Source: Octopus sinensis (Eukaryota). Taken from it: 64,000 nt of DNA. Shown piece after piece: positions 23,823 to 30,300 of this stretch. The first letter of the stretch is position 1; every line of letters begins with the position of its first letter. The position numbers and the translations under genes were made by a program. The notes beneath the pieces were generated by a model that saw nothing but the letters and a program-made list of their open reading frames with translations, did not search any database and was not told where the DNA came from. Location of the stretch: the NCBI RefSeq assembly GCF_006345805.1, contig NC_043014.1, positions 32,488,001 to 32,552,000 of the forward strand, written 5' to 3'.

Positions 23823-24000
23823 ATAGATAGATAGACAGATAGATAGATAGATAGATAGATAGATAGATAGATAGATAGATAGATAGATAGATAGACAGAT
23901 AGATAGAAAGATAGACAGATAGATAGATAGATAGATAGATAGATAGATAGATAGATAGACAGACAGATAGATAGATAGATAGATAGATAGATAGATAGAT
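23823..24000. repeat. (GATA)n microsatellite, 3' flank of Tx1 copy 1
   Basis: Direct reading. Confidence 1.
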
Positions 24001-24303
24001 AACTTTTTATTGTAGCCACACAGGGCTAAACACAGAATAAAAATGGACGAAATACAATGTAGAATTTTTTCTTTTCGAGGTGGGATGGGTGGGGCAAAAA
24101 AAAAAAAAAAAAAAAAATTTTGATCAATAGAGATCTGTGGGTTGTGTGGTGTATAAAAAGCACTATATATATATATATATATAAGGTTCACAGTTTAGGT
24201 GTAGCCTTGGAAAGAAAAACCTACAAAAAAGACCAAGGTCACCTCAGACAGTTCGAAAAAGAACACATGAGTAAGTCGCCTCACTTCTCGTTGTCTCTTT
24301 TGG

Positions 24304-27300
24304 TTACAGATTTATGCTTAAAATAGTGTCGTCTTTCATACTGACCATTTTTGCCACTTTACCCACTTTTTATTAAAACATTCGTTCGACAAAGCCTTCC
24401 TCTCTATTCTCATCCTCCTTTTCAAGTGGTACTTGAAAAAGTTGACGAGAGACTGACCAGAGAGGAAGGTGTTTGTTTGCAGTCCTTTCAAACGCGTCCA
24501 CCACACACATTCTTTCGCCATAGCCATCAGCGTAACGAAAACCGTTTTCCTTCCCGTTTAAAGGAAGGTGGTGGAACAATATTCACGATAGACTCGGCCG
24601 ATAGGCGAGCCTGACCTACACGTGACAACAGCTGTTCGACGAAGGACCACAGCTCTGAAATATCTGGACACTGCACGAGTGCGTGCAGAACGGTTTCATC
24701 GCTCTGATCGCATCTCGGGCAGGTCGGTCCGGTGATGGTTTTCGAACCGTGTCTGTAGCTCTTCTCTCGAACAGGTAGTGCGTCTCGATAGCACTGCCAA
24801 GCCAGGGATTTCTGGAAGTTATCCATAGGCCCCGGCCCGAACGTCGTCCTGAACAGGCGGGTTAGGAATTCCTCGTCGACGCCCAGGTTTGCCCCGAGTG
24901 TGTCGTCGGACCTCCCCTCCACTAGTCCTCTATAGAACGCTTTAGTCGTTTGGAAGTTGCACAAGTTTGACCCCGGTCGGCAGAGCTGCTGTAGAGCTTG
25001 ACGACACTCTCGGTGCCAATCGCCCAGTTCGGTCTCTTTTTGATCCACGTTTGTAGTTCGGTCAGTGAGACGAGCTGCGGGAAGTCGCGCCTCACAAACG
25101 GCGCCACACCTGTTCACCGTCGTCGATGAATTTCCAGAGATGTCGCAGTCTCAGCGCATGCCTGCGCATCATCAACCACGGCATGCCCAGTCCTCCATTC
25201 AACGGATGTTGACAGCAAATGGACTTCCTCACCATCAGAACGCCACCCTTCCACAGGAAGCAGAAGAGTATGCGTTCCAGTTTGGTGATGGTGGCGTCGG
25301 GACAAGGTACGACGGTCAGGCGGTAATCGATGACGGATGTGATGTACGCGTTCGCCACCTCCGCCCGGCCTTTTAGAGACAGCTTTCTCTCGGCCCATGT
25401 TTGCTGAGAGTGACCACTCTACTCGTGATCTCGTCCCAGTTCTTATCCATTTGGAGGTCCGGACTGAACCAGACCCCGAGCAATTAAAACCGGTCCGTCC
25501 GTCCAGCGTCCCACTACTGAGCGCAGTCGGACGGCATGGGCTTGCTTCTCCAGGTGCCGAGTAGCAACCCACTGACTTTTCCGGGTTAATCTTTGCTCCC
25601 GTCACCGTTTCATATTTTCTTAGTGTCTCGCCAACCAGCTCAATGTGCTGGTAGCTCGACACTATGACGGTGACATCGTCCGCATATGCCGACACGCTCG
25701 TCCCGCAACCCAGTTCCCGTGGGATGCCCCTCAGTGTCGCCAGCTTCCGCAGTAGCGGCTCGAGAGTCAATACATACAGAAGCGCCGACAGGGGACACCC
25801 CTGACGGACCGAACGCGTGATGTCAAACAGTTTCGACAGGTGACCGTTCACCCGAATCACCGATCGGATGCCGCTATACAAGGCAGCGATCCAACCGCGG
25901 AAGACGGGACCGAAGCCAGCCGCCCTGAGGACGGCTGCCAAGTACCGATGGTCGACCCTATCGAAGGCTTTAGACTGATCCAAATTTATCAGCCCCACCC
26001 ATGCCAGGATCCTTAACTACCCTGTCCACAATGTAGCGCATCAGATGGAGGTTGTCATGTATGGTTCTGCCCGGCACGGCGCATGTTTGCGCCCTGTCGA
26101 CCAGTTACCAATGACAAGCGCCAACCTCTCGGCTATTACTTTGGCCAAAATTTTCAAATCTGCGTTGAGCAGAGTGATGGGCCTGAAATTATCTATAAAA
26201 TTCCTCTTTTTGAGTCTTTCTTCAGCAACGTCACTGCACCTCGGCTCACGAAACCGGGGATTCTCCCGTTTTGTTGCCAGTTGCAGTAGACTGATGCCAA
26301 GAGGTCGCCAAACAAGTCTGGCATTCGACAATACAGCTCGTAGGGTAAACTATCCAATCCAGGCGACTTATCCCTCGCGCAGCCCGCCATCGCATCCCAC
26401 ATGTCAGCGGCTGTGATGGGACTTTCACAACACTCCGCTTCTCTTGCCGAGAGCCGCGGCAAGTCGGTCAGGTAGGCACTGAAATCCATCCCACGTTCCG
26501 ACCCACCACTCACACCAAACAGTCGAGCAAAGTGCTGTTGAAAGGCCTCACACATCCTTTCGGGTTCGAGTAAACTGCATCCCTGTTGATCTATTAGAGA
26601 CCGAATGGTTGATCTGTTGCCACGCTGCGCCTCTGCTACCTGGGCCTCTCGCGCAGCTTCAATCCCTTCGTTCCTTAAGGCACGCATTTTAGCTCTGACG
26701 ACACAACCTTCGTGCTTGGCGTTGAGGTGTTGGTCGAGGGCCATCCTCGCAGCCAGCACGTTGGTTGCGCTGCCAGTGGTAAGTGCCTCTTCTAGTTTCT
26801 TAACTAAGTCTCCCTCTACTCTATTTCGTTCTATCGCTAATTCCTTGCTAAACCTAATTGATTCCGATTTTATTGCCATTTTCAGGGCGTACCACCAGCG
26901 GTTGTTAACGATCGCTCCCGTCAGCGCCCTCTTAACTCGCTAATCCGTTCCTGTAAATCTGTCGCGCTAACAGCGATGTGTTCAGTTTCCAGTAACCGGG
27001 ACCCTGCCTATGTGTTTTATCTAAGTCGAGCGTACACGTAACAAATTTGTGATCTGTGTAGCTGACTATTTTAAATTGTGGACATCCTACACTATCCCTA
27101 TCCGCTGTCCTGCATAGAATTCTATCTAGATAAGATCTCGACGATCCGACGCGGTTTGTCAAGTCCACGTTGGCACGTTCGGATGGTCGAGTCGGAAACT
27201 GTCAGACAAATGGAAACGTCTGAGCAGGTCTTTGAGGCTCTTACACCCCCTTCTATTTTCTATCCCTTCCCACATAATCTAGATGCGTGTCCAAGGTAGC

Positions 27301-27793: not shown

Positions 27794-29661
27794 TCACTTA
27801 CTCATTTTAAAAGTTTCATTTTTTTCTTCTTCTCTTGTATCGTTTTTGATGAGGTGTTTGTATAGTTTTTTCGACAGGTATCGTTGATACCCGCCTACCG
27901 CATTCGGAAATAAGTTTTCAGTATGTGGTGTTGTGCTTGTGTTATGTGTAAAATTCTGATGTGTTTCGGTGGTGTGGTGTGCGGATGATTGTTTGTCTTA
28001 AAGTCATCTTCACAGACGACCATGTTAGATTTGATGTAGTCCATTAATTCTTTATTGTCTGTGTCTATTGCAGTTAGTTGTGTGTGTGGTTTTACGGGTT
28101 CATTACTTTTTTGATTGTCTAGGGGGATGTTGTCCTGAGTTAGATATCTCCCTGCTTTAATTCTTGTTTGGTGGATTTTTTGGATCTTTTTCTTTTACCC
28201 CCTGTGGCTATTTGCCATTCCGTCGAACTTTCGTCGTCCGATGTATCAGTATGGGGTAGAGGCAAAACATTTGCATTACTATGTATGCTTGTATAAATTG
28301 TTGATGTTTTGTGCGGTGTTTGTGTTGTTGTGGTGTTAGGGGTAGCATTTGTCTTCTCGTCAGTGTTTTCTGTCTTTTAATTGTCGTCCTGGGGTGGGGT
28401 GGGTCGATTTTTGTTAATTCAACAGGTTTAATTGGTTGTGAAGTCAACGGTGATTGTGTTGGTACTGTTTTTCTTGGTGATGTTGTTGGGGTTTGTCTGC
28501 TGGTTTGTTGTTTTCTTGGCGTGTTCCATAATTGAGTGTGTTGGTGTGGTGTTGGCAACAAGGGATTTTATTTGTTTTCTGAATTGTTCTTCTTGTTTTT
28601 CTGTACCAGATCGCACTTGGCAATCAAATGTTCGGGGCTGCCACATTTGTAGCATCTAGGCTTTTTGCCTTCTGCCATAACATATAGGCATTGCCCATTC
28701 TCCAAGTATATCTTGTCGGGTAGGCTCTCGATAGAGGCCCCCCCAATCTGGATGGTCACTACTACTGTTTTTCCACCCCAATTGTCGTTTAGGTACACGG
28801 CTGTTTCTAGAATATTGATCTTTTTCAAGTGGTAACAGATTGCCCCTGTTATCCATTTGTTCGGCATATCGGGGGGTACATTTCTGATAGTAATTCTACT
28901 CACCCTCTGGTTTTTATAATAAGGGACCATGATGATTTCATCATTTCCCAGAGACTCAGTAGAGTGAGCTTTTGCCACTTCCTGGTTAGGGAAGCGGACC
29001 ACTACTGTGTTAAACTGGGGACCCCAGTTTATATACTCTTTTTCTTTCATTATGTTTTTAAACATTTCTCCACATCAGTTTTTGTAATCTGTTCATTTGG
29101 TTTTTTGTTTTTTCTAATAATTTTATATACAATTGTCTTATTTTCAATTTCTTGTTTTATATGTTGAGGTGTATGCAGGACTAAATCTTGTCCACGGGTT
29201 GTAAAGAGAGCTCTTGTTTCTATGAGCTCTTCATTTGTGAATGTAACAATCTCCTTTTTCTGGCGAAGAATATCTGCGAAATTTACTGTTGTTGACTTTT
29301 TTGTATTGGCATCTTCACTATTAGATAGTTCATTTTTATTGTTGTTCTTGTTGTTGCTGTTGTTTTTGTCAATAGTTTTCGTTTCAGTTTTATTTTTATC
29401 ATTTATGTTGGTCGTGGTAGTGGTGGTGGTGGTGGAGGTGGTGGTGGTAGCAGTTGTTGTCTCGTGGTTGCTGTTGTTAGTGGTGGTGGTGGCGGTGGTG
29501 ACAGGGCAGTTAACGCACGTGGTTGCAGCGTTCATCTCACCGAATTTTACGTTGGCATTTTCCGTGCGAACGTTCTTTTTTTTCTCTGTCGTTTCCAGAC
29601 TAGGAAAATTTTGTTCCATAAAAGAACGCGACCAGCGTTCAACAATAAAATTTCTAGACAT
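27794..29661 (-). pseudogene. Tx1 ORF1 (gag-like nucleic-acid-binding protein), frameshifted
   Basis: ORF-track pieces 29050-29661, 28568-29065 and 28208-28561 abut through frameshifts. CX2CX4HX4C knuckle CYKCGSPEHLIAKC at 28613-28654. Thr/Asn-rich low-complexity N-terminus. The end coordinate (stop at 27794) is approximate. Confidence 0.8.
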
Positions 29662-29862
29662 TTTCTAATGTCGAGAAGAAAATAATAGAAATGAAATGGG
29701 GTCGAAACTGCCCCTAGGGGCGAATTCCTCCTTGGAAAAGCACTCAAATGAAAGTTGTTGCCTTACACACCTTATTTGCAAAAATCTACACAAAAATTGG
29801 CCTATAAATAGTCAAAATAAATGATTACCTTCGGAGGAGCTGAAACGACATCACATCCATCA

Positions 29863-30300
29863 ATAGATAGATAGATAGATAGATAGACAGATAGATAGAA
29901 AGATAGACAGATAGATAGATAGATAGATAGATAGAAAGATAGACAGATAGATAGAAAGATAGACAGATAGATAGATAGATAGATAGATAGATAGATAGAT
30001 AGATAGACAGACAGATAGATAGATAGATAGATAGATAGATAGATAGATAGATAGATAGATAGATAGATAGATAGACAGATAGATAGAAAGATAGACAGAC
30101 AGATAGATAGATAGATAGATAGATAGATAGATAGATAGACAGACAGACAGACAGACAGATAGATAGATAGATAGATAGATAGATAGATAGATAGATAGAT
30201 AGACAGACAGACAGATAGATAGATAGATAGATAGATAGATAGATAGATAGATAGATAGACAGACAGATAGATAGATAGATAGATAGATAGATAGATACAT
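29863..30300. repeat. (GATA)n/(GACA)n microsatellite, 5' flank of Tx1 copy 1
   Basis: Direct reading. Confidence 1.

Follow-up and report, generated by a model that had tools for sequence, protein, structure and literature searches.

Two related retrotransposons lie inside (GATA)n microsatellite arrays on a 64,000-nt stretch of the Octopus sinensis genome (the window, in whose positions the coordinates of both copies are given), and the question that this locus raises is whether such elements came to rest in the repeat by chance, carry it with them as a tail, or insert into it specifically. An initial annotation, made from the letters of the window, had proposed the last of these, an octopus lineage of the Tx1 clade targeting (GATA)n, and the proposal is supported by four genomic copies, an intact element on a metagenome scaffold (L017) and the monophyly of the TATC-associated sequences. 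We consider it probable that an octopod L1-group (most likely Tx1-clade) long interspersed nuclear element (LINE) lineage integrates specifically into existing (GATA)n·(TATC)n, with TATC always on the sense strand, our confidence being limited chiefly by sample size (n = 4).

The two arrays and the coding parts of the first element, copy 1, are arranged as follows.

24002-29865, minus strand: copy 1, a decayed near-full-length L1/Tx1-type non-LTR (long terminal repeat) retrotransposon, 5,864 bp
29866-30297: 5'-side (GATA)n array of copy 1, 432 bp, with a higher-order pattern of GACA/GAAA variant units
28568-29661, minus strand: open reading frame 1 (ORF1), split by one frameshift; a T/N-rich low-complexity N-terminus, then a conserved domain
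26960-27713, minus strand: apurinic/apyrimidinic (AP)-type endonuclease of ORF2 (Exo_endo_phos, E = 2.4e-11), interrupted by frameshifts and stops
25114-26330, minus strand: reverse transcriptase (RT) of ORF2 (RVT_1, E = 8e-24), with several frameshifts
24351-25117, minus strand: C-terminal part of ORF2 with the zf-RVT cysteine motif (E = 1.3e-6), then the stop codon region
23826-24001: 3'-side (GATA)n array of copy 1, reading GATA on the plus strand and TATC in the sense of the element, with GACA and GAAA variant units

Read on its sense strand, copy 1 runs from (TATC)n through a 5' untranslated region (UTR) of ~200 nt, ORF1, an A-rich linker of ~850 nt, ORF2 and the 3' UTR into (TATC)n again. 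The conserved domain of ORF1 is closed by a CCHC zinc knuckle (zf-CCHC, E = 3.4e-4), and homologues of this ORF1 are present among O. bimaculoides and O. vulgaris gene models. The earlier description of the element as near-full-length holds for its extent, 5.86 kb from 5' UTR to 3' UTR, but the copy is badly decayed and, its ORF2 being broken by frameshifts or stops at eight or more places, it is dead.

Both arrays abut copy 1, as the initial annotation had stated. The 3' UTR terminates in CAATAAAAAGT (at greater length, ...GCCCTGTGTGGCTACAATAAAAAGT) with (TATC)n directly after, and the sense-strand 3' junction, at which a poly(A) tail is absent, reads ...GGCTACAATAAAAAGT followed immediately by TATCTATC...; at the other end, 0-3 nt separate (TATC)n from the start of the 5' UTR. 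The array on the 3' side (23823-24001, 179 bp) aligns end to end with 29871-30049 in the 5'-side array, and the pattern common to both is GACA-GATA-GATA-GAAA-GATA-GACA-(GATA)10-GACA-GACA. This matching variant pattern indicates that the two arrays are pieces of one older array and not a tail made by reverse transcription; they could represent one structured array split by the insertion, a long target-site duplication (TSD), or a later exchange between the flanks.

The second element of the window, copy 2, belongs to a sister sub-lineage and is likewise enclosed by the repeat.

52602-54693, minus strand: copy 2, a 5'-truncated copy of 2.09 kb
54694-54761: (GATA)n array on the 5' side of copy 2, adjoining the truncated end and passing into (GGAT)n
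52537-52601: (GATA)n array on the 3' side of copy 2, adjoining the element end

Copy 2 begins within the N-terminal part of the RT (LGFVSRGAV...); across element positions 3611-5676 it shares 72-75% nucleotide identity with copy 1. Its 3' junction reads ...GGCCAATAACGAAACA followed immediately by TATCTATATC..., and its flanking arrays are oriented relative to the element as those of copy 1 are, which bears out the earlier report of a diverged relative in the same arrangement and orientation. For the other GATA arrays of the window (21222-21309, 44018-44067 and 55591-55682), described before as empty (~21225, ~44030 and ~55600), no adjoining element 3' end was found. All seven GATA arrays of the window (span 21222-55682) are co-oriented and read GATA on the plus strand.

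Two further copies were retrieved blind to their flanks, through an ORF1 protein match (P0210), on Octopus vulgaris chromosome OX597828.1 (locus L019), where they form the layout array-A-array-B-array, both on one strand and in the same orientation with respect to the repeat (locus positions below).

5833-5952: (TATC)n array
8663-8822: (TATC)n array, at once the 3' array of copy A and the 5' array of copy B
14888-14955: (TATC)n array, passing into (TGTC)n

Copy A is 5'-truncated near element position 3205-3229 and ends in ...GGCTAATAAAGAAACA. Copy B is full-length, shares 91% nucleotide identity with copy 1 and ends in ...GGCCACAATAAAAAAGT; its 5' UTR starts directly after the array, at the place equivalent to that in copy 1. 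Beyond the arrays, sequence is unrelated between loci. Across 5833-40258 of this locus, ten arrays read TATC on the plus strand versus one small GATA array, and when window and locus are taken together 9/10 empty arrays point the same way as the elements. The upstream flanks of the empty arrays are mutually unrelated, and several arrays are composite (TATC)n(TGTC)n.

A fifth 3' end comes from the metagenome scaffold L017, which encodes an intact 1148-aa ORF2 (P0201) with 75% protein identity to the decayed C-terminus of copy 1 and ends in ...GCCCTGCGTGGCCAATAAAGAAATC (AATAAAGAAATC), followed by (TATC)n as far as the contig end. Overall, both junctions lie in AGAT-type repeat in 4/4 genomic copies (8/8 junctions), full-length and truncated alike. 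Two tests had been set in advance, concerning the 5' flanks of truncated copies and the orientation of insertions: both truncated copies (copy 2 and copy A) have (TATC)n at the 5' junction, and the sense strand carries TATC in each of the four genomic copies as well as in L017 (5/5). The register at the 3' junction is also constant, the repeat opening with TATC in 5/5 cases that are not fully independent (three sub-lineages). A family has been regarded as microsatellite-specific when the same repeat flanks >20% of its copies (PMC4494074); here the same microsatellite flanks every genomic copy at both ends and L017 at its 3' end, in a very small sample, with constant orientation and with the 5' array kept in both truncated copies.

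In the window, perfect AGAT-type runs, with the arrays that host elements counted, make up 1.04% of the sequence and (AT)n makes up 1.9%; in the O. vulgaris locus the corresponding shares are 1.78% and 1.75%. ACAT, AC, AAT and ATC repeats are common too. By our own arithmetic on these measured shares, and with copy 1 set aside as selected for its flanks, the remaining three landings would have a probability of ~(0.02)^3, i.e., ~1e-5, under uniform insertion, and of ~0.01-0.02 if insertion were confined to any microsatellite, orientation being uncounted in both figures. The insertions can be treated as independent because their truncation points differ (~3205-3229 vs 3611) and the flanks beyond the arrays are unrelated. 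Chance is unlikely to explain the GATA flanks.

Relatives were collected by protein searches with the frame-corrected ORF2, the ORF2 C-terminus and ORF1, which returned few close ones, and a neighbour-joining tree was built over ~1.6 kb from the RT to the C-terminus (200 bootstrap replicates). Copy 1, copy B, copy 2, copy A, L017 and L016 form one clade with 100% bootstrap support, with the (ATT)n-associated sequences and the Argonauta sequence outside. Within it are three sub-lineages, i.e., copy 1 with copy B (d = 0.04), copy 2 with copy A (d = 0.19), and L017 with L016, and their 3' termini differ (AAAAAGT, GAAACA and GAAATC). As this clade spans up to ~30% nucleotide divergence, the TATC association appears to be a trait of the whole clade and not of one young family. 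The root of the tree is unreliable, because the outgroup L004 (TARA) aligned over only ~100 nt, and the unrooted TATC clade alone was used.

The 3' ends of the relatives outside this clade are of three kinds. The sister sequences L003, L005 and L018 keep the conserved terminus GGCCAATAAAGAAATC and continue into (ATT)n. A copy from Argonauta hians (L002) ends in ...GGCTAATAAAGAAATC with neither repeat nor A tail and has a 17-bp TSD, TATTTTTAAAATTTGTA; this element (L002 12010-12645) contains two tandem 3' UTR copies inside the single 17-bp TSD, which suggests template switching or a composite insertion. A more distant intact relative (38% identity; P0151; L020-L029, ENA ERZ21867824), whose ORF1 also bears zf-CCHC, occurs in head-to-tail tandems and, outside tandems, at one exact site in a ~250-bp dispersed repeat, where it lacks an A tail and is bracketed by the 17-bp TSD TTAAGTTAACTCCAGCC. 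The block GCCC(T)TGTGGCYAATAAAGAAA is conserved at the extreme 3' end in all lineages. Contigs L001, L006 and L016 end before the 3' terminus, and their junctions are uninformative. A metagenome scan with a cephalopod ORF2 alignment recovered only relatives at 25-37% identity.

Membership of the Tx1 clade is most likely, judging from domain architecture, similarity to the L1 group and behaviour. ORF2 opens with an AP-type endonuclease, detected as Exo_endo_phos in both copy 1 and P0201, and in the latter the catalytic positions N, E, Y, D/N, T, D and D-H align with those of the human L1 endonuclease. An L1-group RT and a C-terminal Cys/His motif follow (RVT_1 and zf-RVT, in copy 1 and relatives). 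The best solved structure for this ORF2 is human L1 ORF2p (PDB 9k6g, 8uw3, 8sxt; E = 1.5e-53, against ~1e-19 for R2), in a match that covers the endonuclease through the RT and wrist. ORF1 carries zf-CCHC, the insertions show a target-sequence preference, and a poly(A) tail is absent. Tx1-clade ORF1 proteins are said to have one or more CCHC zinc knuckles, as opposed to the Transposase_22 type of mammalian L1, a distinction reportedly drawn by Khazina & Weichenrieder in 2009. The assignment also agrees with what octopus genomes are known to contain, and it can be set beside two published accounts. L1-Tx1 is the only L1-group LINE class in the O. vulgaris repeat annotation (PMC13282606); reports that leave target specificity unmentioned count 13 recently active O. 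vulgaris families among the L1-Tx1 LINEs of octopus genomes (PMC13282606, PMC8967140).

If the element favoured AT-rich or simple-repeat DNA only loosely, or built up passively in low-recombination, microsatellite-rich regions, the GATA flanks would mirror local abundance. GATA arrays are indeed numerous in both regions (1.0-1.8% of sequence), relatives do land in other AT-rich sequence ((ATT)n, or TATTTTTAAAATTTGTA in Argonauta), and the position of Waldo-A/B near CA repeats in Drosophila has been read as passive accumulation (PMC3812793). However, (AT)n is as abundant as AGAT or more so, and other arrays are common, yet all 8/8 junctions fall in AGAT; together with an orientation constant in 4/4 copies and a 3' register constant in 5/5, this makes abundance alone an unlikely account.

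An element-borne 3' tail, comparable to the (TAA)n of the I factor or the short repeats of L2/CR1, would explain (TATC)n without targeting, the 5' arrays being older tails or coincidence. Directly behind its conserved terminus each lineage does have a constant repeat, which is TATC for the octopus copies and L017 and ATT for L003, L005 and L018, and the 5' array of copy B doubles as the 3' array of copy A. What is seen at the 5' junctions nevertheless argues against such a tail: the repeat is present there in 4/4 copies, including two truncated at different points, 3/4 of the 5' arrays have no element 3' end upstream, and the 5' arrays equal or exceed the 3' arrays in length (432 bp vs 176 bp). 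Fresh synthesis by RT, moreover, would not reproduce the idiosyncratic variant pattern shared by the two arrays of copy 1, and the Argonauta relative is tail-free, from which it follows that the ancestral terminus needs no tail. A repeat confined to the 3' side, an unrelated 5' flank and a TSD enclosing element plus tail, by which an element-borne tail would be recognised, were not seen, and we find this explanation very unlikely. Spread of a single ancestral GATA insertion together with its arrays, the whole array-element-array cassette being copied through segmental duplication or unequal exchange, recalls the tandem copies A and B and the co-orientation of arrays throughout each region, but is scarcely credible given three diverged sub-lineages (d = 0.19-0.30) with distinct 3' termini, different 5' truncation points and unrelated sequence outside the arrays. 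For the two copies of the window, segmental duplication is ruled out as their origin by divergence, truncation points and unrelated flanks.

Several points nonetheless weigh against specific integration into (GATA)n by a Tx1-clade lineage. The sample comprises only four genomic copies and one contig end, and two of the copies share one array cluster. Co-oriented GATA arrays are unusually dense in both regions, so that the local base rate of the repeat is high and may be unlike that of the genome. In the closest sister lineage the terminus is followed by (ATT)n without exception, which would also fit lineage-specific 3' tails. Finally, RNAalifold gave no conserved 3' hairpin over the last ~60 nt of nine elements, and a GGCC...GGCC mini-hairpin is unsupported because no conserved structure is predicted.

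If integration is indeed specific for (GATA)n, it may proceed by target-primed reverse transcription within the array. The endonuclease would nick the GATA strand, leaving ...GATA-3'OH. AATAAA is conserved 5-8 nt from the element terminus, so cleavage and polyadenylation are expected in the downstream repeat, giving transcripts with a few (UAUC) units. The (UAUC) units of such read-through RNA would then anneal to the GATA strand at the nick, and this pairing would fix the register of reverse transcription; the read-through transcripts of R1 and R2 offer a parallel for it. The second strand would be cut elsewhere in the array, and the resulting TSD would be invisible within the repeat; in relatives the TSDs are 17 bp.

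Specificity could be carried by the nicking preference of the endonuclease, by RNA-target pairing, or by both, and pairing of the read-through RNA 3' end with the nicked repeat is as viable a source as a reading of (GATA)n by the endonuclease. In the region of the βB6-βB5 hairpin the TATC lineages have (S/T)NR(T/V)GSSR and the ATT lineages A(T/N)(R/S)SG(Q/S)(S/A)R, a difference that may be taken only as a lead to endonuclease specificity. The βB6-βB5 loop influences the nicking profiles of the L1 and Tx1L endonucleases (PMC1950540); a short query with the hairpin loop of the Tx1L endonuclease against the PDB chimera 2v0r gave nothing relevant. A more far-reaching idea, which we hold to be rather unlikely, is that target choice comes mainly from flank-derived repeat units on the read-through RNA and not from the endonuclease, that a chance landing in a new repeat re-programs a lineage, and that abortive, repeat-only reverse transcription seeds or extends co-oriented GATA arrays. 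If true, it would account for the switches between TATC, ATT and non-repeat ends among close relatives and for the 9/10 empty arrays that point as the elements do.

Insertion into microsatellites is known from several groups of LINEs. Targets in the Tx1 clade are (TC)n for Kibi, (TTC)n for Koshi and (TTCC)n/(TTTC)n for crocodilian families (PMC4494074, PMC3812793); among R1-clade elements with an AP endonuclease (APE), Waldo targets (ACAY)n and Mino (AC)n, and elements with a restriction-like endonuclease include Dong (TAA)n, Togen (TG)n and some HERO families (PMC3812793, PMC4494074, PMC4640811). The octopus lineage most resembles the teleost Kibi and Koshi and the crocodilian Tx1-1_Crp and Tx1-2_AMi (Kojima & Fujiwara 2004; PMC4494074), which are likewise L1-group APE LINEs without poly(A), with both junctions in one microsatellite and in constant orientation, and in which the target also differs between close lineages, being (TC)n, (TTC)n or (TTCC)n in those families and (TATC)n or, apparently, (ATT)n in the present elements. 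However, Kibi and Koshi use homopurine/homopyrimidine repeats, whereas the tetranucleotide targeted in octopus, (GATA)n·(TATC)n, mixes purines and pyrimidines, and their hosts are fish whereas that of the octopus lineage is a cephalopod mollusc; the resemblance is one of features.

Tx1L of Xenopus laevis, Keno, Mutsu, Dewa and Tx1-Mar share the CCHC ORF1, the ORF2 order of APE, RT and zinc motif, the lack of an A tail and sequence-specific insertion, and the relative at 38% identity (L020-L029), with its single dispersed-repeat site, 17-bp TSD and head-to-tail tandems, behaves as a Tx1L-type element. In these families the target is a unique site in a transposon or small-RNA gene, as opposed to the simple repeat used by the octopus lineage. 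Waldo and Mino (R1), Dong (R4 clade) and Togen (NeSL-related) are alike in a microsatellite-targeted 'safe harbour' mode of LINE insertion but belong to other clades and use other target repeats, Dong and Togen with a restriction-like endonuclease instead of APE. Human L1 ORF2p conserves the endonuclease catalytic residues, whereas human L1 inserts promiscuously (TTTT/AA) and in a poly(A)-dependent manner, and its ORF1 consists of coiled coil, RRM and C-terminal domain without a CCHC knuckle.

These comparisons support the octopus lineage as a microsatellite-specific Tx1-like LINE, a lifestyle already known, whose (GATA)n target and cephalopod host are unreported in the searchable literature: searches for Tx1 or non-LTR elements with GATA, AGAT or TCTA found no GATA-specific Tx1 family there, Repbase and Dfam being outside their scope. 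Microsatellite-targeting LINEs are rare and few repeat units are documented for them, with no GATA in that literature, and the lineage would be a natural case of 'safe-harbour' integration by an L1-like machine. The different ends of close relatives are evidence of target switching, and the TATC clade, its (ATT)n sister and the repeat-free Argonauta element make up a compact comparative series for the specificity of APE LINEs, in which endonuclease loops can be set against pairing of the RNA 3' end.

For octopus genomics, the elements interrupt GATA microsatellites otherwise usable as markers, produce tandem element arrays, and have probably already been mis-annotated as host genes in two cases. 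The O. vulgaris 'hypothetical predicted protein' P0210 (L019 10001-37526) is a 27-kb gene model built on the ORF1 fragment of copy B. The O. bimaculoides entry A0A0L8GCS6 (P0200) has an ORF2 C-terminus fused to ORF1, which implies tandem elements spliced together.

Other repeats also neighbour the GATA arrays of the window. Copies of an octopus short interspersed nuclear element (SINE) adjoin them at 23640-23822 (minus strand), ~43900-44017 (plus strand) and 55690-55780 (plus strand): the first SINE adjoins the 3'-side array of copy 1 with its head, a composite (TA)n(TG)n SINE tail encloses the array at 44018, and the array at 55591 stops at the 5' end of the third. Beside the 5' array of copy 1, an unrelated 5'-truncated LINE (30335-31614, plus strand) adjoins (CATA)n/(TA)n and retains an open frame of 406 aa with the C-terminal half of an RT and a PHD/C1-like cysteine motif. 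Elsewhere in the window, 4296-4395 is an assembly gap of 100 N, and a 20-bp tandem repeat, TTGTTACACATCAATAGATA, forms two arrays at 17964-18096 and 18535-18673 with (CATA)n/(TA)n microsatellites between them.

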